From the sequence record OP310984.1: a DNA stretch of 64,000 nucleotides. One strand, 5' to 3'. The position numbers were made by a program, and so were the translations under genes. Positions 484 to 61,945 of the stretch are shown here, one piece after another. The stretch's first letter is position 1. Every line of letters begins with the position of its first letter. Under the pieces are notes generated by a model that ran no database searches, was not told the origin of the DNA, and worked only from the letters and a program-made list of their open reading frames with translations.

Positions 484-1872
484 CGTTATGTTCAGTATGG
501 GTCGTTAATCCATACCCGGTAGTATAATTACCACATGATAATTACCACCTGCTGCATGTCGCCATGCAGACCAGACTATATCTTCACCCTTCCTTTCGGA
601 GTAGGGTGTCTCCCATTTCGAGTCACTTGACTCTACATCCTATTTCTAGGACCGGCGCACCTGATACCGTAATAGTCGTTGAACCTTCTCCTATTCCTAA
701 ATGGAATGTTACGGAGCTTGGCTGCTGATTGTCCCTACCTAATCTTTTTCAAACCTTGGCTTTGTCTTTCGACTCGCAGTGGTAGATTAGTTTAACAGGA
801 TATCCCAGCAATTAGAGAGAACTCATCCCAATGATTACTCATTGGGGGAACTAGACTTGATTAACTTAATAAGGTATTTATCAAGCACCCCATTCTTTTC
901 AAAGATTGCTCTTCGAATAGTATTCGGATGCTTAATACCGACATCTCTTGCAAAGTGTGGAATACTTGGATACACTTTGGTAGTGTTCAAGATGGTGTCA
1001 GTTACTTCAATTGGAGTGCCTTTTCCATTACTAGGTTTTCCAAATGAGGCTTCAATTTCTTTCTGAGTATATTTAGGGAAATCTTCAGGATTAGCAGTAT
1101 ATGAGAATACCAGACCATCCATGATTTCCTTACTACCTCTAACTAGATGGTAATAGGCTTTATTACGTTTAGTACCTAGTGCAAGTTCCATTTCTGCTAA
1201 GTTATGAAACACATGTAATGTCTTAGTCTTATAGTCTAAAACATAAACTGTCTTGGTACTTTCACGATCAGCAATCTTAGTCTCACCGGTAATAAATTCA
1301 AATGTGAATCTATTTCTATACGGCTTAGTCTTATGGTCACGTATAATAACCCAAACCGTATTTTTATTAACTCCTAATACCCGAGCAAGTTCATTCATCG
1401 AGTAATAAGTAGTCTTTTCACCAGTGGTAACATCAGTTGCAATTACCCGTCTATTTTCTTTTCTTAATCCATTTTTGTAAGCATGCTCAATGTTTTCACC
1501 ACGAGTCATCCATTCCAAATTGGATGGTAAGTTATTATGTTTGTTGCCGTCTTTATGATTGACTTCATATGTTGGTCCAGGAGATGGACCATGGAATGCA
1601 GTACAAACTAGAATATGCGCTCCCTTACTTTTTGATGTCTTTTCATCATTTTTTGCACCTATATTGAGATATGTCCCAATTGATGTTTTAGTAAGGAAGA
1701 AATTACATATTCTATTTAACCGCTTATGACGAATCGTTCCTAAGTTACTAGCCTCTTAAGCTGAGTATCCAGGAATATCTCGCCATTCAATTTTAAATGA
1801 AGCCGGATCAAAGACGGACACTACTCCGTTTTGTTCCATTGTCTTTTACCTTATTTGGTTATTCAATTGTCC
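484..1872 (-). mobile_element. group I self-splicing intron (1389 nt) with endonuclease ORF in the P1 loop
   Basis: 5' splice site after U (AAT at 1875-1873), terminal G at 484. Core elements: P AATTGCTGGGATATCC (~798-813), Q AATCAGCAGCC (~720-730), R GTTCAACGACTA (673-684), S AAGATATAGTCT (573-584). Confidence 0.93.
835..1839 (-). pseudogene. NUMOD4-HNH homing endonuclease with a premature TAA at codon 28
   Basis: ATG 1839 with SD AAGGT; WRDIPGYSA*EASNLGTIR (NUMOD4-like); HILVCTAFHG...EVNHKDGNKHNN..NLEW (HNH); then repeated NUMOD1-like modules. TAA at 1756-1758. Would be 334 aa if intact. Confidence 0.85.
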
Positions 1873-3117
1873 ATTAGGCGCTTTAAGGCATAAAACTGAC
1901 ATGCTGATAGAATTATCATTAATGTCATCTTTTACTTTAGTAATAAAGAACTGCTGCGTAGATCCACGTTGAAGCGTTGGATTTCGGTGAAAAGTACAAC
2001 CCATCCCTTTATAAGGGGCTGCTTCTGCAATTAGCTCTTTAAATAGATCTGCAATGATTTGGTTATATTGAAGTACATTCTCATATACAAATGAGAATGC
2101 TTCACGAGTTGTCATGTTAAACTTTGCTTTTAGTTTATTGGTTAGATGATACTTTAATAATTGACAACCTACCCCCCAAGGGATATGTAGTTCATCATAA
2201 TCATGCGGGTCACTAATAGAAGTGATTACTGCACGTGCCGTAGCGTTGAGACGAGCACCAAACATGTGACGCCGAGCAAGACCAGGCTTTTGAGCAATTC
2301 GTGATTTTGCGTAGATCTCGTAGAACTGGCCATATAGTCTTAGTCCTCGCATAGTCCTATTCTGAGCTTTAATTGGACTAAGTGGTACAGATGATGCATC
2401 AATACTAGCGAAGGTTAAGGTAGCATCAATTGCTGCTTCAATTGGTTTATCTAAGTAAGTACCAGATGTGGTTGATTCTGCTACGAAACAGAGTTTAGAA
2501 GGAACTGGTAAATATTTAGGGAATAACTTATCTTTATTCTGAGCAACGAATTGAGCGAATTCGGATTTATTATTAGAGATAATATTTGCATCTAGTAGGA
2601 ATTGGAAGATCTCATTGAAATTATCAATGAAGTGATTTAATCCTCTTTCAAATCCTCGATGCAGTAGCCTATCTACTTTCCTGCGTGTTTCCTTAGAACC
2701 AATAGATTCTACATCGTATCGATAAGAAGTATCAGTTAGATATGCTAAGAAATCGAATTCTTTAGTTACTAGATATCCGGTTAGCATAATGATTAAACGT
2801 GGGTTAATTAGGCTACGTACATGTTTTGGTGTACGAACCCACATTGATGGTTCGATAGGACGGCTAGAAGTATTGACAACTGGAGTATTACAAATATCAC
2901 AGATTACTCCGAGTTTATGTGCGTCTTCGATTGCTCGACAATCACAGCTTACACTACTTTCAATTGCTTCTGAATCTTGGAAATGAGAATAGAAATGCCT
3001 ATCAAATTCTTCTTTCTCATCTGAGTTACTCGTATTGTAATCATTGGCATAAATTCGTTTACCCGTAAATTGATCATGAACTTCATTATGATCAACAACT
3101 TTGGCATAAAGACCCAT
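1873..3117 (-). CDS. non-virion RNA polymerase beta-prime N-terminal subunit, exon 1 (phiKZ gp55-like)
   Basis: Zn-binding CDC...CDIC, conserved beta-prime motifs KPGLARRHMFGARL and FHRNPTLQRGS; ends KAPN at the splice site. Confidence 0.92.
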
Positions 3118-3142
3118 ACCAAACTCCTATTTATCGATTAAC

Positions 3143-3511
3143 AAAAAAAGGAGATATAAGCGGCCCCCGAAGGAGCCGCTATATCAGTTTTTACAATGGA
3201 CCACCAACGGAGCCTGGCCCGATCCTAGCGTCATCTACAAAGCTTAACCTCCGCTCTTCTCTGTAGCATACCGGCACTAGTATCATTTACCATCCATTGT
3301 AGTTTTTGATCACACGTCACCTTTTGAGTAACTCCTTTCGGTTAAGTGATCTATCATCCTCGTGTAGTGATAGGTCGACCTAGACTAAGTCCACTAGTCG
3401 ATTACTTCACGGAACCTACTCCTAACCGTTATCACCGAAGTGAACCAGGGTCGCAGTATTAGAATCGGGATGTTACTTATTTAACATCCCTATCTACCGA
3501 GGTATTTCCTA
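3143..3511 (-). ncRNA. candidate structured RNA or long 3' UTR downstream of chimallin
   Basis: No ORF of 60 aa or more; at least 7 stems, including UUCG and GAAA tetraloops and a 9-bp long-range closing stem (3192-3200/3294-3302). Ends in a UUCG terminator. Confidence 0.5.
3155..3184 (-). terminator. intrinsic terminator ending the chimallin transcript
   Basis: GCGGCTCC-TTCG-GGGGCCGC followed by TTATATCTCCTTTTTTT on the minus strand. Confidence 0.75.
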
Positions 3512-5392
3512 TTAGTACCAGGTACCCGGTGCATTATAGGAAGGAGCGCCGTAAGTTTGACCCATGCTGCCAGCCATACCAACTTGTGCACTACCAGAAA
3601 CAGCCATGTTACCCATACCGGTGTAACCAGCGAAGCGCTGTTGACCGAAGTTGGTAATTAGGTTTTCCATGGTTACAGTTACACCAGCGGCTGCTGCTGC
3701 GGCATCCATTGCGGTGATGAATTTCGGGTTAAAGGTTAGACGACGAGCACGACCAGTATAGGTAACGTTACCTAGGTACATCTTGTCGAAGCCTTTACTG
3801 TTATTCATACGACGCACAATGTGGTCATTACCTACCTGAGTAGCATACCAGGTCTTCCACTCTTGGTCATTACCTTCAGACATGTTCATGGCACCTAGAA
3901 CGTCAAGATCACGACGGTCGCTTAGTTCGCCATGCTCATCAGTGTAGTGACCGAGGTCTACTTCATGATGGTTGTCAAAGATAATCGGACCAGCTTCAGC
4001 TAGGTTATAGAACTGACGGAAATCAGTGCCGTATAGGTTAGTTAGAGCTTGGAAGATCAGGCTAACTGCACGAGCTTGGTTTACGCCACCAGCTGCATCT
4101 AGGATGACTTGCTCAATAGCTGAGTTGTCGCCCATTGGATCGATATCGATCTGGAATGCAGGGTTCTGGTTAACCATCTTGTTCATTAGCATTACGAAGT
4201 TGCTGTCGTCTGCCATGAATGCTTCGGTGCGAGTTTCAATCGCTTTACCTAGCTCTGAGTAATAACCAAGTGCACCAATATCACGCATCTTACTAGTAGC
4301 GATCTTCGGCATTAGAGTACGAGCCCATGCCTGAGATGCAGTTGCACGATACGCGTTACCAAGCGCGAACAGCCACATTTCTAGAGTCCATGCTTGGATC
4401 CAGGATGCCTTACGAACGTCAGTAATAACGATGTAAGGAGTGAACTGCGGAGGTAGAACTGCACCAGGTAGAGTTACGCCAAACATGCCTTGTTGCTGGC
4501 CAGTGGTCGGAGTCCAATGTAGATCTACGAATAGACTAACTTGGTTTAGCTGGCTATCGGTATCATAGAACTCGTTCTCAGGTACGTTGGTTTTCTTACC
4601 ACGGCTAGTGGAGATGACCAGGTCAGAACGGATCGGATTACCACAGCTATCTTTAACCGGAATACCATTGTAGTCTAGATTGCAGGTAAGCTGTTCGTTT
4701 TCTGCTTTGATGTGGGTCGCAATAGAGAACGGAGTCTCATTGTTACGACGCGCAATAGCATCTTCACAGATATTAACGGATTCAACTAGTAGGTTCTTAA
4801 CAGCTAGTTCATCTTTGAAGTCGAAGTCAGCATACACTGCACGTGGACCGGCAGATAGTACTTCTAGACCAGGGATGTTGTAACGGTTCCGTAGGAACTC
4901 GCCGATCTTGCTCCAGTATTGAGCAGTGAATACATCACGCGGTAGTACCTTCTCTTCAATGATGTCATCAGTTAGACCATTGTTGATTTTGTGGGTACGG
5001 GGACGGATGCGAGTACCAGGTAGGTTATCGAGTACTAGAGTACGAACGAATGCCTTCATGGAACCATTGATATCTTTAGCTAGTTTAACAATGAGTAGAC
5101 CAGCCATACCAACTTGTTGCGCATCACGATCGAAACGATGGATATCGAAGTCATCAGGTAGGTCCTGATGGCGGATTGCTTCTTCTTTTACTTTAGTGAA
5201 TACTTGTAGGGCATCTGCTGAACGAGCATCAGAGCCATCTAGCCGACCAGAGCGACGCATTAGATGGTTAATGCCAGTAGTAGACCCAGGCGCGCCAGTA
5301 GGACGTTGAGCTTGACGCTGTGCAGTGGGTTGCGGAGCCGGAGCGGTAGCTTGAGTTTGAACGGTGCCGATTTCGTTTTCGTTAACAGCCAT
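3512..5392 (-). CDS. chmA: chimallin, major phage nucleus shell protein (phiKZ gp54-like)
   Basis: 626 aa with low-complexity N- and C-terminal tails, directly upstream of the nvRNAP beta-prime gene as in nucleus-forming phages; GC-richer composition than neighbours. Confidence 0.88.
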
Positions 5393-5464: not shown

Positions 5465-5488
5465 GTAATATAAATCTCAAATTTTTTT
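5465..5488 (-). promoter_or_regulatory. early promoter of chmA
   Basis: Minus strand AAAAAAATTTGAGATTTATATTAC, a perfect TATATTAC motif. Confidence 0.75.
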
Positions 5489-56953: not shown

Positions 56954-57038
56954 GCCCGAATGGTGAAATTGGTAAACACAGAAGACTTAAAATCTTCCGG
57001 CTACGGTCTTGTCGGTTCGAATCCGACTTCGGGCACCA
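56954..57038 (+). tRNA. tRNA-Leu (anticodon TAA)
   Basis: Cloverleaf with long variable arm, loop CTTAAAA, TTCGAAT T-loop, encoded CCA. Confidence 0.95.
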
Positions 57039-57047
57039 ATTTAAATA

Positions 57048-57123
57048 CGGAGTGTAGCGCAGTTGGTAGCGCGCCTGCTTTGGGAGCAGGATGTCGGGAG
57101 TTCGAGTCTCCCCACTCCGACCA
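57048..57123 (+). tRNA. tRNA-Pro (anticodon TGG)
   Basis: CCTGC-TTTGGGA-GCAGG anticodon arm, encoded CCA. Confidence 0.95.
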
Positions 57124-57144
57124 TTTTAATAATAGGTAAATAGG

Positions 57145-57438
57145 ATGGATAATAAATGGATATCATGGGAACATCAAATTATAGGAACAGCTCTTTACGC
57201 TATTCTTAGTGACCCTGAATTAACTAATATTCAATTAGCTCAAGGCTTACACTATCTAACAGAAGCAAAGTCTTCTGTATTACATGTTTGTAATAACCAT
57301 ATTACATTCACTGTAACCTATCCACATGGCACATTTAGAACCAATGTAATTAGAGAGTGCCCTGCTAGTGATACAAATACATTCAAATGGTCAGGTGTAT
57401 TAGTCCGTCAAAAAGATGGAACATTCTTACCAGAATAA
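57145..57438 (+). CDS. hypothetical protein
   Basis: 97 aa, SD AGGA. Confidence 0.65.
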   Translation: MDNKWISWEHQIIGTALYAILSDPELTNIQLAQGLHYLTEAKSSVLHVCNNHITFTVTYPHGTFRTNVIRECPASDTNTFKWSGVLVRQKDGTFLPE

Positions 57439-57445
57439 ATAAAAA

Positions 57446-57522
57446 GGGCCTATAGCTCAGTTGGTTAGAGCAGGCGACTCATAATCGCTTGGTCGCAGGT
57501 TCAAGTCCTGCTGGGCCCACCA
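57446..57522 (+). tRNA. tRNA with CAT anticodon, most likely Ile2 (lysidine type) rather than Met
   Basis: Arm GGCGA-CTCATAA-TCGCT and overall sequence closely resemble enterobacterial ileX as I recall it; encoded CCA. Confidence 0.85.
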
Positions 57523-57574
57523 TATACTAGCCTCCCACTTGGGGGAGGTTTTATACTGTCTCATTGAGGAAAAC

Positions 57575-57796
57575 ATGAATACAGTAATAATGTTGGTATT
57601 ATCTATCAAAGTTGGATTATTTGGTTTCATTTCGACTAATGAAAGTAATATCCTATTTGAAAATAGGGAACAGTGTATTTCTCATCTGGATATTCTGGAA
57701 CATAAATACAAGTCTCTTGAAGTTATTCGAAATGAGAATACTCTAAAGATAACCGAAAGAGATAACCATTCTATTTATATTTTTAAATGTCTCTAG
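57575..57796 (+). CDS. small hypothetical protein with a hydrophobic N-terminus
   Basis: Likely start ATG 57575 (MNTVIMLVLS) after SD GAGGA. Confidence 0.6.
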   Translation: MNTVIMLVLSIKVGLFGFISTNESNILFENREQCISHLDILEHKYKSLEVIRNENTLKITERDNHSIYIFKCL

Positions 57797-57804
57797 GAAA
57801 ATAC

Positions 57805-58092
57805 ATGGAACATCAAGAACAAAAAGAACTATTGAGACAACCATTACAAACACTTTATAATCTTACTTTTAGTCCCCGTTTACGTAATGGAGCGAAGGCT
57901 CCCGATTGGATTCACCTGACCGATGAAGTAACCCTATTCCCAAACGGATTAGATATTACAATCAACGCTGTTACACGTTGCATCAAATGGGAACTTATCG
58001 GCGAGGATGTAAGTAACATTACTTATGTTGAAGCTATGTTCTTTAATAAAGGTCTTAAAGCAGTTAAAGCCTATCTCAAACATACGGAGTAA
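57805..58092 (+). CDS. hypothetical protein
   Basis: Likely start ATG 57805 (MEHQEQKE) after SD AGGA. Confidence 0.65.
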   Translation: MEHQEQKELLRQPLQTLYNLTFSPRLRNGAKAPDWIHLTDEVTLFPNGLDITINAVTRCIKWELIGEDVSNITYVEAMFFNKGLKAVKAYLKHTE

Positions 58093-58094
58093 AT

Positions 58095-58442
58095 ATGGAT
58101 CATCTAACCCCAACGCAGAGCGCTGTATATTTCACATTTATTAGCCCTGAGTTTATAAAGCTAACTCTTGTTGAATCTTTTGTAGTGATCCACAAGAAAC
58201 ATCCAGAAGTAAAGCATTGCGTTAAGAAAAAGATTAGTACTAATGAAACGCAGTTTATCTTTATCTTCAAAGATGGGACTGATAATTTAATCATTACACG
58301 TAAAACTGAACCTTGCCCTGAACTGGATAGCCCAGTAGGCGATAGTATTAAGTTGTCCGGCGAAGAACTTAAAAATATTCTTGCTAAGTACGATCGTCCC
58401 AAGGATGGTAACTATTTCAAGCACTGGACTGATCACCCGTAA
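58095..58442 (+). CDS. hypothetical protein
   Basis: 115 aa, SD GGAG. Confidence 0.65.
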   Translation: MDHLTPTQSAVYFTFISPEFIKLTLVESFVVIHKKHPEVKHCVKKKISTNETQFIFIFKDGTDNLIITRKTEPCPELDSPVGDSIKLSGEELKNILAKYDRPKDGNYFKHWTDHP

Positions 58443-58494
58443 TAAAATATTACTGGTTATGTAATACTATGTAGGAAGTCATGTCCATACGTTT

Positions 58495-58571
58495 GCGCTC
58501 ATAGTTCAGTTGGTTAGAATACCCGCCTGTCACGCGGGTGGTCAGGGGTTCGAGTCCCCTTGGGCGCGCCA
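58495..58571 (+). tRNA. tRNA-Asp (anticodon GTC)
   Basis: CCCGC-CTGTCAC-GCGGG arm, encoded CCA. Confidence 0.95.
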
Positions 58572-58577
58572 TTTAAT

Positions 58578-58653
<76 letters not shown>

Positions 58654-58659
58654 TATTCT

Positions 58660-58684
58660 AAAGAGTAGCTTCGGCTACTCTTTT
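58660..58684 (+). terminator. UUCG terminator after the tRNA-Asp/Asn pair
   Basis: AAAGAGTAGC-TTCG-GCTACTCTTT. Confidence 0.8.
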
Positions 58685-58737
58685 ATGTTGCCATGGGTTA
58701 TCTTATGAATTAAAATGATTTACTTGAGAGCACACTC

Positions 58738-59751
58738 ATGTTTGAATTACTATTAGCAACTAGTGGTAAAATAAAGCCAGTTGAATTAGTACAATATATC
58801 GGTTATGAAAAAATAGCTGACCTGGATATTCCGTTACATGGTTCTATCCCTTATATTTGGAACGATAAACTATTCGTTAAGGGTGGCGGTACAGATGTTA
58901 GTTCTAGTGATCCAGGATTACGCAGGTTTAAATTAGATGGTACGTTTGAGAATAATAAGAATTTAAGCAACTACATCTATCATACGAATCCAGCGCAAGA
59001 CTCACGAACTGGTAGAGTTTATTTAATCAACGGTAGGTCTAATGGTAGCTGGAGTTCTAGAGTGGTCCATGCCATAGATGCTTCTGCGGAGACTATAACT
59101 AATCTTGGTTGGAGCACTCCTCGTGGGAACTATGGTAACTCCACGGTATTTGACGAAGATAACAACAGAATTTACGTCCAATTCCACGATAGTAATCAGT
59201 TCGGTTATTACACAACCGATGGCGTCTATCATAACAGCCCGAAAGGCTTTCCTGCTGCTAGTCTAAGTGGTGCTTTTATATTCAAACATAAAGGCTACAT
59301 TTACGTGATGGGTGGATGGGGATCCAGTGTTGCATCAAATCCGGATCACCTGGCGAAATTCGATGCTGGGACAGCAATGACGACAATCATGAGAATGTCG
59401 ATTTATACACAATTGTGGGAAGTGTACGATATATTACCTACCGAATACCATGGTGGTAACCAGGGCGCCGGTAACTACCATGAAGGTATCTTCAGCTATA
59501 TTAGCTGGAGTGGTAGTAAACTCGGTGCGGTTCGCTATGATGTGTCTGGTAAAAGATTTATTCGTTTTGATACGGGTATTAGCTATCGCAACGCGACCGG
59601 TGTGGTTGGTAATAAAGGAGAGCTGTATCTGGTTGGTGGATGTTCAATTCCGTTGGGCTCGACTAACCCACCGTTCGGTAGAAAGGCAGAAACGAAGACA
59701 GAAATATACAAGTTCATCCTTCCTGCTCCACTACCACCAAGTGATAAGTAG
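58738..59751 (+). CDS. Kelch-like beta-propeller protein 1, probably virion-associated
   Basis: 337 aa; blade motifs LFVKGG, VYLING, IYVMGGW, LYLVGG; N-terminus MFELLL. Confidence 0.7.
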   Translation: MFELLLATSGKIKPVELVQYIGYEKIADLDIPLHGSIPYIWNDKLFVKGGGTDVSSSDPGLRRFKLDGTFENNKNLSNYIYHTNPAQDSRTGRVYLINGRSNGSWSSRVVHAIDASAETITNLGWSTPRGNYGNSTVFDEDNNRIYVQFHDSNQFGYYTTDGVYHNSPKGFPAASLSGAFIFKHKGYIYVMGGWGSSVASNPDHLAKFDAGTAMTTIMRMSIYTQLWEVYDILPTEYHGGNQGAGNYHEGIFSYISWSGSKLGAVRYDVSGKRFIRFDTGISYRNATGVVGNKGELYLVGGCSIPLGSTNPPFGRKAETKTEIYKFILPAPLPPSDK

Positions 59752-59903
59752 GTGTTACGTACACCAATGCTAGAACCTCACAGAGGGGCAGGGTATCTTA
59801 GTATTGGTAACAGTCTTTACACCTTATAAAGGCAGCCATTTGGCTGCCTTTATGCCGTTACCGTTTATCTTATGACTTAACTGTATTACTTGAGAATATA
59901 CTC

Positions 59904-60911
59904 ATGTTTGAATTACTATTATCACCAGATATAGGCGAAGAGTTACCCTTGGTTGGATTTAATGAAATTATTAAATTAGGTGATCTACCTGTAGCGTTAG
60001 CTGGTACAATGTCATATGTGGATGGAAATACACTGTATGTTGGATCTGGTCATCATACTGAAGGACAAACAGCTGCAACTGTGTTCAGACGTTTTACCAT
60101 ATCGCCATTTGCCGATATAGGTGCAACTGCTTCTGGAACATTCTTACCAGGGGTATCTTTAGGATTTGGGACATTACATAAGAATAACTTTATTGTTTAT
60201 GGCGGTATTACTGGATGGAACTCGGCTGGTAATGGTGGTACGGGAACATCTAACTTTATACAACATTTTGATATAGCTACAGGCAATAGGGTTGAGCGAT
60301 ATAGTGGTCCCGTACCACTTTGGGGCACAGCCTCCGCATCAGATGGTAATGATCTTATTCTATGCGTTAACCCAATTGGCGTAAACGCAATGCGATTAAA
60401 ACCATCAAGTAAGTCTTGGCTTAGCGGGCAAGACTATTCAGGTGGTGCTCGTTCAGGTCAACAGTTATTCTTTTATAATGGTTACTTTTACCATTTTGGT
60501 GGTTGGGATAATACAAAGAACATACCTAATCTTGAAGTTTATCGATATAATGCAACTACCTTAATATGGGAGCAAACACCTTGGATGATTATACCTGCTG
60601 ATAAAGGAACAATCTGGCAAGGTAATGGTTATGTAGATGGGGACTATTTTAATTACCTTAACGCTGTTGATGTCGGCGGTGTAACTAAAATGTTTGCACA
60701 ACGTTTTAATATTAGGCGCCGGAAATGGGCTGAACCATTTGAACTAGGTATCGGATTCCTTAATATTTCATCTATAGCTAAAGGTCCGGATAATAGCATG
60801 ATCATTGTAGGTGGATCTAAAATGCCAGTTGGTGGTGGAGCATATATGTTGAAAAGCCAATTGTTATCAGGTATCTATCAGGTAAAACTAGCACCATTAA
60901 TCATTGATTAA
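59904..60911 (+). CDS. Kelch-like beta-propeller protein 2
   Basis: 335 aa; LYVGSG, FIVYGG, FYHFGGW, MIIVGG; N-terminus MFELLL. Confidence 0.7.
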   Translation: MFELLLSPDIGEELPLVGFNEIIKLGDLPVALAGTMSYVDGNTLYVGSGHHTEGQTAATVFRRFTISPFADIGATASGTFLPGVSLGFGTLHKNNFIVYGGITGWNSAGNGGTGTSNFIQHFDIATGNRVERYSGPVPLWGTASASDGNDLILCVNPIGVNAMRLKPSSKSWLSGQDYSGGARSGQQLFFYNGYFYHFGGWDNTKNIPNLEVYRYNATTLIWEQTPWMIIPADKGTIWQGNGYVDGDYFNYLNAVDVGGVTKMFAQRFNIRRRKWAEPFELGIGFLNISSIAKGPDNSMIIVGGSKMPVGGGAYMLKSQLLSGIYQVKLAPLIID

Positions 60912-61195
60912 AATAATAATATTTATAACTATTTAGATAATTATACTGGCACGATGATATTATGTAAGAGTACTATAATAAAGTATTCTTAAATCTATCC
61001 ACTAAACACACTCGGTGGTAGAACTTATTATAGAGTGTGTCTAAATGCCAGGGGTTTGCCACCCCTGGTTATATTCATTGTTACTATTATAAATTCATTT
61101 ATAGATGAGAAAAGGTTTTATCACCTTTTCAAAATCGGCATTTAATTCCAGTTAAAAAACTGAATCTATGCTACATTGTAATAAAGGAGTCTATT

Positions 61196-61708
61196 ATGAC
61201 TAACTCTAATCCGTTTGTAAGAACTATTGTAAAGTACCAAGATATCCTAGATGCTTTAATTCAAAAAACGAATGAGAACTGGGTTAATTATCGATCTAAT
61301 TCTATTGGTCATATTGTTATTCGTGAATACAGGACTGTTGGATTATTTGTAGGTCGGCAATGTGGTAGTACAACTGCATTGATTGAGTTTGCTAATCGTC
61401 ACCCTGGCGAATGTCTAGCTGTATTTGTAGAAGATAAAATTAAACAGGCTGTACTGGCTAAGTTCCAGAATGCTAAAGATAATATTGTTTCTTGTTTAAT
61501 TACACACCAACTCCGCAAATATATTCATCAACCTGAAGAATCATCTATTCAAAAAGATATTAAAGAAGAATTAATATCGTCTGTAAAATATATTCTTGTT
61601 GACAATGCCTCATTTAATCTGAACCTACGCGGTATCACTGATAAAGAATTTAACCAGTGGGTTGCAGATACTTTTGGTACAGAGGTAATGGTGGTTCGTT
61701 TTAGTTAG
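61196..61708 (+). CDS. single-domain degenerate P-loop protein
   Basis: 170 aa; VGLFVGRQCGSTTALIEF (Walker A with Lys replaced by Ser), YILVD Walker-B-like strand. Confidence 0.55.
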   Translation: MTNSNPFVRTIVKYQDILDALIQKTNENWVNYRSNSIGHIVIREYRTVGLFVGRQCGSTTALIEFANRHPGECLAVFVEDKIKQAVLAKFQNAKDNIVSCLITHQLRKYIHQPEESSIQKDIKEELISSVKYILVDNASFNLNLRGITDKEFNQWVADTFGTEVMVVRFS

Positions 61709-61773
61709 AATTAGTAACTTTGATAGTTTCTAATAAGATTAACTACACGTTATTTACATAATGTCATAACAAG

Positions 61774-61808
61774 AAATAAATAATACTCAGATTGTAATAA
61801 TATGTAGT
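61774..61808 (+). promoter_or_regulatory. promoter of tRNA-Asn copy 2, identical to the chmA upstream promoter
   Basis: 35/35 match to the reverse complement of 5546-5580. Confidence 0.65.
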
Positions 61809-61869
61809 TATTACATATCTATATTAGGTTGTCAGTAACTCATCTCTAATATAAAATCGCCATAATTCT

Positions 61870-61945
<76 letters not shown>

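Follow-up and report, generated by a model that had tools for sequence, protein, structure and literature searches.

What occupies the gap behind the chimallin gene of phiKZ-type Pseudomonas jumbo phages, between the stop codon of the nuclear shell protein and the start of an RNA polymerase gene? The question is raised here by a 64,000-nucleotide (nt) stretch of DNA from sequence record OP310984.1 (the window), which belongs to such a phage. At this locus, the minus strand is the coding strand for all genes, and the order runs from chimallin (chmA) through the spacer to the gene for the β′ subunit of the non-virion RNA polymerase (nvRNAP; gp55). The spacer measures 394 nt (3118–3511), is 100% identical to that of KTN4 and ~99% identical to that of phiKZ, where no gene is annotated in it, and has a G+C content of 0.43–0.47 compared with 0.34–0.36 in the downstream gene. 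A first-pass annotation, made from the letters of the window alone, had proposed that this region is free of open reading frames (ORFs) and specifies a functional RNA that is co-transcribed with the gene of the shell protein. The comparisons described below make it very likely that the spacer encodes a selected structured RNA, and the alignments show that RNA structure is selected for on the chmA sense strand, whereby a predicted multi-domain RNA of ~330 nt is maintained.

Conservation of the spacer among phages

Fifty-seven phage records contain the spacer. Over ~360 nt, it is 85% identical to its counterparts in the phages PA1C, BRkr, and PS119XW, whereas the chimallin proteins of these phages are 48% identical to that of the window, their flanking genes reach 66–70% nucleotide identity, and other non-coding DNA is hardly alignable. 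The differences between the window and PA1C are distributed unevenly with respect to the predicted structure, affecting 34 of 155 unpaired columns (22%) versus 19 of 216 paired columns (8.8%). Twelve of the 13 changed pairs remain canonical, five of them through changes on both sides. Within the 99%-identical phiKZ group, one pair has been converted from U-A to G-C by a double substitution (T to G and A to C). The structure also contains 12 G-U pairs, and since the opposite strand would have A-C mismatches at these positions, the constraint acts on the chmA-sense RNA. Covariation, conservation above that of the flanking genes, and the restriction of these G-U pairs to one strand together lend good support to the proposal of a functional RNA transcribed with chmA.

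Architecture of the RNA

The spacer is predicted to fold into a four-way-junction domain (A), a three-way-junction domain (B), and a branched domain (C), followed by a strong intrinsic terminator. The parts, all on the minus strand, are as follows.

3188–3511, minus strand: structured element, that part of the 3′ untranslated region (3′UTR) which lies between the chmA stop and the terminator
3359–3501, minus strand: domain A, four-way junction; independent predictions for the window, PA1C, and PhiPA3 give one and the same fold
3498–3501/3359–3362, minus strand: P1 of domain A, long-range CUCG/CGAG stem that closes the four-way junction, supported by covariation
3493–3496/3460–3463, minus strand: P2 of domain A, carrying the hairpin GGGAUGUUA/UAACAUCCC (3482–3490/3467–3475)
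3449–3458/3417–3427, minus strand: P3 of domain A, long arm capped by a UUCG hairpin (3432–3443)
3405–3410/3367–3373, minus strand: P4 of domain A, GUGAAG/CU.UCAC, with inner helices at 3396–3401/3375–3380 (UCGACU/GGUCGA) and 3389–3393/3381–3385
3308–3351, minus strand: domain B, small three-way junction with the closing stem GAUCAC/GUGAUC (3346–3351/3308–3313)
3193–3300, minus strand: domain C, the most widely conserved module, with an 8–9-bp closing stem CAAUGGAU/GUCCAUUG (3292–3299/3194–3201)
3275–3284/3221–3230, 3259–3266/3235–3242, and 3253–3255/3246–3248, minus strand: long (bent) arm of domain C, with the invariant apical sequence AAGAGCGGAGG
3214–3218/3203–3207, minus strand: short arm of domain C, with the invariant loop GCUCCG
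3143–3187, minus strand: intrinsic terminator made up of a 14-bp stem that has one bulge, a UUCG loop, and U7 (−22.4 kcal/mol, z-score −4.95)

Most stems listed in the first-pass annotation are real, in that GGGAUGUUA/UAACAUCCC, the UUCG hairpin at 3432–3443, UCGACU/GGUCGA, GAUCAC/GUGAUC with its GAAA loop, CAAUGGAU/GUCCAUUG, and the terminator all occur in both the minimum-free-energy and the alignment-supported structure. The CTATCA/TGATAG stem is not a conserved pairing and gives way to the covariation-supported GUGAAG/CU.UCAC and CUCG/CGAG, which are formed by the same bases. A conserved single-stranded UAGGUUCC follows P3 in domain A. Domain B contains two hairpins, one of 2 bp with a GAAA cap and one of 6 bp, and its GNRA tetraloop is GAAA in most lineages and GGAA in L036, one of two viral contigs that are introduced below.

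In domain C, the closing stem leads into a junction with the sequence UGGUAAA. The two invariant loops are complementary to each other over 5–6 bp (GCGGAG with CUCCGU), and the loop–loop duplex has an energy of −12.2 kcal/mol, which is matched by 2.5% of shuffled loops; the long and short arms could thereby engage in a 5–6-bp kissing interaction. The hinge between helices 5 and 6 of this domain (3221–3284) varies within the phiKZ group. PA7, U1B, and kmuB carry a PA1C-type sequence there, and the window and phiKZ have ~8 clustered derived changes, a difference that reflects either an ancestral polymorphism or a recombination patch.

The terminator lies 7–8 nt downstream of domain C and ends ~25 nt ahead of the start codon of the downstream gene. 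Its core, GGCUCC(C)-UUCG-(G)GGAGCC with a U-run, is kept across several genera (3143–3187 in the window and equivalent sites in the loci L004–L043). Of the Pseudomonas chimalliviruses examined, nearly all have a GGCUCC-UUCG-GGRGCC core with a U-run upstream of the RNA polymerase gene, even those whose spacers measure 80 nt. Such sequence conservation is unusually strong for a terminator. A consensus terminator scanner missed 3143–3187, as 3 nt separate the stem from the U-run.

Covariation and folding energy

The evidence for each domain comes from lineages of different depth. PhiPA3 retains the four-way junction of domain A, with a P3 that differs in sequence and keeps the same shape and a P4 that has received an insertion of ~160 nt, and the covariance model of this domain (R1) matches PhiPA3 at 44.8 bits. 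In the domain A alignment, 99% of cells are paired, and changes on both sides are found in 8 of 47 pairs, compared with 29–43% paired cells and zero or one such pair in slid-register controls. The closing stem of domain B is fully compensated in PhiPA3 (AACCAC/GUGGUU versus GAUCAC/GUGAUC), and all six pairs of this helix (helix 1 of alignment A8) show changes on both sides. When domains B and C are aligned together, 98.6% of cells are paired (28–48% in slid controls), and both sides have changed in 27 of 47 pairs. The domain A and the B+C alignments were fitted to covariance models, which favours the structure. For domain C, an alignment made by MAFFT only (A12) gives 13 compensated pairs out of 36, and neither the junction UGGUAAA nor the loops AAGAGCGGAGG and CCAGGCUCCGUUGGUGG vary in it.

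The B+C covariance model also finds matches directly after the chmA stop in two ~315-kb contigs of the IMG/VR collection, L036 (80.9 bits) and L026 (63 bits), which rise to 106 and 94 bits, respectively, with a model of domain C only. Chimallin in these contigs is 43% identical to that of the window, and the chimallin tree places both inside the Psa21/D6 clade, far from phiKZ. The number of pairs that are compensated between such distant copies shows that domain C has persisted for a long time under selection and has not spread recently.

By comparison, the folding energy exceeds chance only moderately, whereas the comparative evidence clearly does, and the case for an RNA therefore rests on the latter. 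The folding z-score is −4.0 for 3143–3511 and −2.5 once the terminator is removed; the three domains taken separately score −2.7, −1.8, and −1.5, and the opposite strand scores −2.9. For domain C, the energy is −33.3 kcal/mol in the sense and −20.8 kcal/mol in the antisense direction. Among the checks suggested together with the first-pass annotation, the one against shuffled controls is thus not convincing from energy alone, and the one for covariation and conservation is clearly positive. A DNA-level element is excluded by the asymmetry of the G-U pairs.

Coding potential and relation to known RNA families

The description of the region as ORF-free holds, given that it contains only short ORFs with non-conserved starts. 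A small protein-coding ORF can be dismissed, as the ORFs differ in every lineage and the AUG of a 31-aa ORF is lost in PA7 and PA1C. Between the invariant blocks of domain C, a 1-nt indel distinguishes the window from L036 and L026; it puts the blocks in different frames, so that what is conserved in domain C is the nucleotide sequence. In several recent GenBank records (PV565008, OR608733, and PQ741806 among them), one or two coding sequences for a "hypothetical protein" are annotated over 3143–3511, and these are probably false gene calls, their ORFs being non-conserved.

The RNA matches no catalogued family and has been noticed before only in passing, at the homologous site of PhiPA3. In Rfam 15 at E ≤ 10, region 2900–3800 gives no match on the RNA (minus) strand and none near the gathering score of any family, and nine homologous loci give no match at all at E ≤ 0.1. 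As a positive control, the group I intron at 552–872 on the minus strand, 2.3 kb away, is found at 85.3 bits. ARAGORN predicts no tRNA or transfer-messenger RNA (tmRNA) in 2800–3800 or in the homologous loci, and Rfam tRNAs occur in the window only at 56954–61942. A tRNA, tmRNA, or tRNA-like gene is accordingly rejected, its cloverleaf not being recognised by ARAGORN or the Rfam models.

ROOL and GOLLD are large structured non-coding RNAs (ncRNAs), often carried by phages, that are long and multi-branched and have GNRA or UUCG tetraloops and possible kissing loops. The RNA of the chmA spacer is likewise long, ornate, multi-branched, and phage-borne. In contrast, it shows no homology to them in Rfam 15 at E ≤ 10, is smaller (~330 nt), has domains that are exchanged independently, and sits in the 3′UTR of an mRNA instead of next to tRNA genes. 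No covariance model of ROOL, GOLLD, or another catalogued large ncRNA matches the minus strand at this threshold, and these identities are rejected.

With group I introns, the RNA shares a phage-borne structure of a few hundred nt, GNRA tetraloops, a place in the same gene cluster, and a patchy distribution. Unlike them, it lies outside any ORF and has no match to RF00028 at E ≤ 10. There are also no exons to join, since chimallin is complete and the RNA polymerase ORF begins only after the element (start at 3117), and an intron is disfavoured. Co-conversion driven by the intron endonuclease does not account for the 85% identity either, as identity reaches no more than 66–70% in the part of gp55 that separates the intron site from the spacer.

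The closest parallels are bacterial and phage ncRNAs derived from or embedded in 3′UTRs, such as 3′UTR_PHIKZ298 of phiKZ and ncRNA1 and ncRNA2 of PAK_P3, which are also phage-encoded, conserved among relatives, located between stop and terminator, and transcribed from the promoter of the mRNA. The order at the present locus is of this kind, with the stop codon at 3512–3514, the element at 3188–3511, and the terminator at 3143–3187, all on the minus strand, which the G-U pairs fix. The differences are that the chmA-spacer RNA is three to four times longer, has several domains with three- and four-way junctions and strong covariation, and lacks an obvious single-stranded seed. Of the roles offered in the first-pass annotation, a stand-alone ncRNA, whether free-standing or 3′UTR-derived, stays the best fit to the sequence data.

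Another of those roles was that of a sponge for the host regulator RsmA/CsrA, and several loops were stated to carry GGA. Counting shows otherwise: among the nine GGA triplets, the covariation-supported structure places a single one within a hairpin loop, and the remaining ones are base-paired or at the stop codon. A sponge that titrates RsmA/CsrA, or Hfq/Crc, away from post-transcriptional regulation would find some backing in the GGAG of this one conserved hairpin loop (apical AGCGGAGGU) and in the A-rich linkers that flank domain C. However, known RsmY/RsmZ sponges carry many exposed GGA motifs, and no match to RsmY, RsmZ, or CrcZ is obtained in Rfam at E ≤ 10; the idea is hardly credible.

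Inferred transcription of the element and probable read-through into gp55

The sole early-promoter-like sequence on the minus strand between 527 and 5473 is TTATATTAC at 5465–5473, upstream of chmA. For chmA, both early and middle promoters have been reported (Wicke et al.). Because no early-promoter-like motif is found between the promoter of chmA and gp55, the element would be transcribed at the very high level of chmA. Expression in phiKZ is inferred from the position between stop codon and terminator, and gp55 is probably reached by partial read-through of this terminator.

Such an arrangement brings to mind a leader or attenuator of the nvRNAP β′ gene, in which domain C would sense a ligand or a protein and set the read-through into gp55. 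The order of domain C, terminator, ribosome-binding site (RBS), and gp55 is kept in phiKZ, PA1C, phiHQ, L036, and L026, gp55 probably depends on read-through, and the invariant junctions and loops on covarying stems resemble an aptamer. Attenuating riboswitches and protein-dependent leaders likewise combine a conserved junction fold and invariant loops with a position immediately upstream of a terminator and the next RBS. Unlike in these systems, constrained folds of four lineages reveal no shared alternative partner for the 5′ strand of the terminator, that is, no conserved antiterminator; the partners differ from lineage to lineage, and losing the terminator costs 17–20 kcal/mol. Moreover, the same terminator is conserved in phages that lack domain C, which also speaks against a mechanistic role for the GGCUCC shared by a domain C loop and the terminator, and no riboswitch family is matched. 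Attenuation by domain C is therefore very unlikely.

Experimental data exist for the homologous site of PhiPA3, where the region between chmA (gp53) and gp54 shows high read coverage and peaks of ChmC in enhanced crosslinking and immunoprecipitation (eCLIP) (Enustun et al. 2024, PMC11077065). Its authors suggest "small regulatory RNAs" at this peak and give no structure, boundaries, family, or function (PMC11077065). The genomic position is the same, and domains A and B as well as the terminator have homologues in PhiPA3, whose 3′ domain differs from domain C of phiKZ. Because domains A and B are shared, the peak is very probably the same RNA family seen experimentally.

Several points weigh against the fuller explanation that is proposed for the RNA further below. 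The single-sequence folding energies of the individual domains are unremarkable. The sample of sequences is small, comprising ~5–6 independent lineages, and two of the three pair counts come from model-fitted alignments. The kissing contact is based on two invariant loops and draws no support from covariation, which such loops cannot show. ChmC has little specificity in its binding of phage RNAs (PMC11077065), so that the eCLIP peak may reflect abundance only. In phiKZ, the papers on differential RNA sequencing (dRNA-seq), gradient profiling by sequencing (Grad-seq), and ONT-cappable-seq list no ncRNA here in their main text, and a discrete, abundant, processed species is for this reason unproven; the element is also absent from the text of the phiKZ papers on antisense oligonucleotides (ASO) and transposon sequencing (Tn-seq).

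Exchange of modules at a fixed site

All Pseudomonas chimalliviruses sampled share the order of chmA, terminator, and nvRNAP β′ gene. The sequence that separates the stop from the terminator ranges from nothing to ~450 nt, and the spacers of relatives measure 12–874 nt. The contents are as follows.

phiKZ and PA1C: modules A, B, and C
phiHQ: modules X, B, and C; chimallin is identical to that of PA1C, and a structured module X of 300 nt replaces A
PhiPA3: modules A, B, and C′, the last being a distinct 3′ domain not matched by the model of domain C
L036: modules B′ and C
L026: module C alone
D6 and Noxifer: terminator only (D6 spacer of 87 nt)
L021:4759–4944, L024:4768–4932, L025:4795–4999, L028:4828–5021, and L030:4900–5145: other structured inserts of 90–170 nt (z-scores of −3 to −5), located after the stop of chmA and before the conserved terminator

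Comparison of these loci shows that the predicted modules are gained, lost, and swapped in a cassette-like manner at one fixed site among related nucleus-forming phages with nearly identical flanks. Module X is a second, unrelated conserved structured RNA, found in phiHQ (L003:3208–3512), Psa21 (L004:4405–4560), and the Ralstonia phage RP13 (L054:2455–2597). Eight of its 15 predicted pairs are compensated, and it has no Rfam match. In Psa21, it lies within the chmA–RNA polymerase spacer, under an annotated 243-nt "hypothetical protein" on the opposite strand, and in RP13 it is directly upstream of a tRNA-Leu gene, a location as would be expected of a free-standing ncRNA.

Further copies were sought more widely. 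No second copy of the element occurs in the window or in phiKZ-type genomes, and blastn against plasmids gives no match. In IMG/VR, the domain B motif matches only a PA7-like contig, and the invariant 17-mer of domain C retrieves the known members plus three coincidences in coding sequences, which the covariance model rejects. Exact and gapped scans for the junction motif yield three metagenome-contig and two genome-contig matches that share only the pattern, most of them inside ORFs, in a number close to chance expectation by the authors' own estimate. With a single chimallin protein as query, IMG/VR returns one close relative, and an alignment query is needed to find more.

The patchy distribution and the clean replacement between identical flanks (PA1C versus phiHQ, and within the Psa21 clade) are what selfish mobile RNA or DNA cassettes would produce, for example derivatives of introns or ribozymes that persist by their own spread and bring the phage no benefit. 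A mobile group I intron that carries an HNH/NUMOD1 ORF does lie in gp55 of the same phage, at a distance of 1.3 kb. The spacer, however, has no Rfam match to an intron or ribozyme, although the neighbouring intron scores 85 bits; it holds no ORF, and these genomes yielded no further copy; and domain C bears the marks of long independent evolution under structural constraint, not of recent spread. Selfish persistence is accordingly rather improbable.

The same distribution bears on a cis-acting 3′UTR element of chmA, which would influence the translation of the mRNA, guide its export or its localisation close to the nascent shell, or guard it against RNase E or 3′ exonucleases. Owing to its place between stop and terminator, the RNA is part of all full-length chmA mRNAs, some structured insert is present at this position in many chimalliviruses, and ChmC, a nucleus-associated RNA-binding protein, peaks here in PhiPA3. 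On the other hand, phages with nearly identical chimallin have no insert (D6) or unrelated ones, so that ChmA can be produced without it. Loops that stay invariant across chimallin lineages of 43% identity are not what a generic stabiliser would show, and the terminator hairpin alone (−22 kcal/mol) already supplies 3′ protection. The roles in mRNA export, localisation, or stability that the first-pass annotation had listed are thus hard to reconcile with close relatives that lack the element or have a different module in its place, and a cis-acting element is unlikely.

A proposed role for the modules

As the modules are swapped between close relatives, some of which have the terminator only, the RNA is accessory and not required for chmA expression. 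A fuller explanation, tentative and at somewhat less than even chances, is that the modules are accessory ncRNAs or ribonucleoproteins carried along on the transcript of chmA, which is highly expressed. The stretch from chmA to the terminator would serve as a high-expression slot, whose RNA would be produced abundantly, beginning in the first minutes after infection, through the early and middle promoters of chmA. Each module would be an accessory ncRNA with a defined tertiary shape, which for domain C probably involves the loop–loop kissing contact and the GNRA tetraloop contributed by domain B. Most likely, each would bind a protein as a scaffold or decoy, with ChmC or another RNA-binding protein of the phage, or else a host factor, as conceivable partners. 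The modules may act within the chmA mRNA or after processing, and would exert no apparent cis control over chmA or the polymerase gene.

A bolder version is a long shot. It would make the chmA 3′UTR a dedicated, horizontally exchangeable slot for tertiary-folded modules, with domain C as a new RNA class that has an activity of its own (RNA-only assembly through the complementary loops, a ribozyme, or a decoy against RNA-level host defence) or that takes part in ChmC-mediated handling of shell-associated mRNA. A function of this kind would be specific to phages that expose no nucleic acid other than RNA to the cytoplasm.

Flanking genes and other features of the window

The element is flanked by two genes.

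3512–5392, minus strand: chmA, upstream gene for chimallin (PHIKZ054 homologue; Pfam PF25677 Chimallin_Phikzvirus, E = 0; PHROG nuclear shell protein)
1846–3117, minus strand: gp55, downstream gene, first exon of nvRNAP β′ (PHIKZ055 homologue; PHROG 2987 RNA polymerase beta subunit)

Chimallin is 100% identical to that of KTN4 and 99.7% identical to that of phiKZ, and it spans the Pfam model from end to end (1–626 of 627), terminating ahead of the RNA element. The gene is closed by tandem in-frame stops, UAA UAG (3509–3514), with UAA at 3512–3514 and UAG at 3509–3511. On the minus-strand RNA, the tandem stops are followed by the element, the hairpin with U7 (3143–3187), an RBS, and, ~25 nt further on, the AUG of gp55.

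Relative to PA1C and PhiPA3, the nvRNAP β′ gene is split by an insertion of ~1.39 kb (484–1871, minus strand), which corresponds to the known phiKZ orf55–56.1 arrangement. The insertion comprises the group I intron core (Rfam RF00028, 552–872 minus, 85.3 bits) and a NUMOD1/HNH-type endonuclease ORF (835–1518). Six tRNA genes are clustered at 56954–61942 on the plus strand (Rfam tRNA, 63–73 bits), as expected for phiKZ.

Significance for nucleus-forming phages

phiKZ is the model nucleus-forming phage and chmA its key early gene, yet directly behind this gene lies an RNA of ~330 nt under clear structural selection that is absent from annotations and from Rfam. Because the DNA of these phages is hidden by the shell, it is their RNA that host ribosomes, RNases, and RNA-targeting defences encounter, and a part in the contest with the host is plausible for abundant phage ncRNAs. 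The analysis supplies exact boundaries, a predicted secondary structure, specific loops, and natural module-swap variants, and it links these to the unexplained ChmC eCLIP peak of PhiPA3. For phage engineering, it means that the gap between chmA and gp55 is not an empty spacer.

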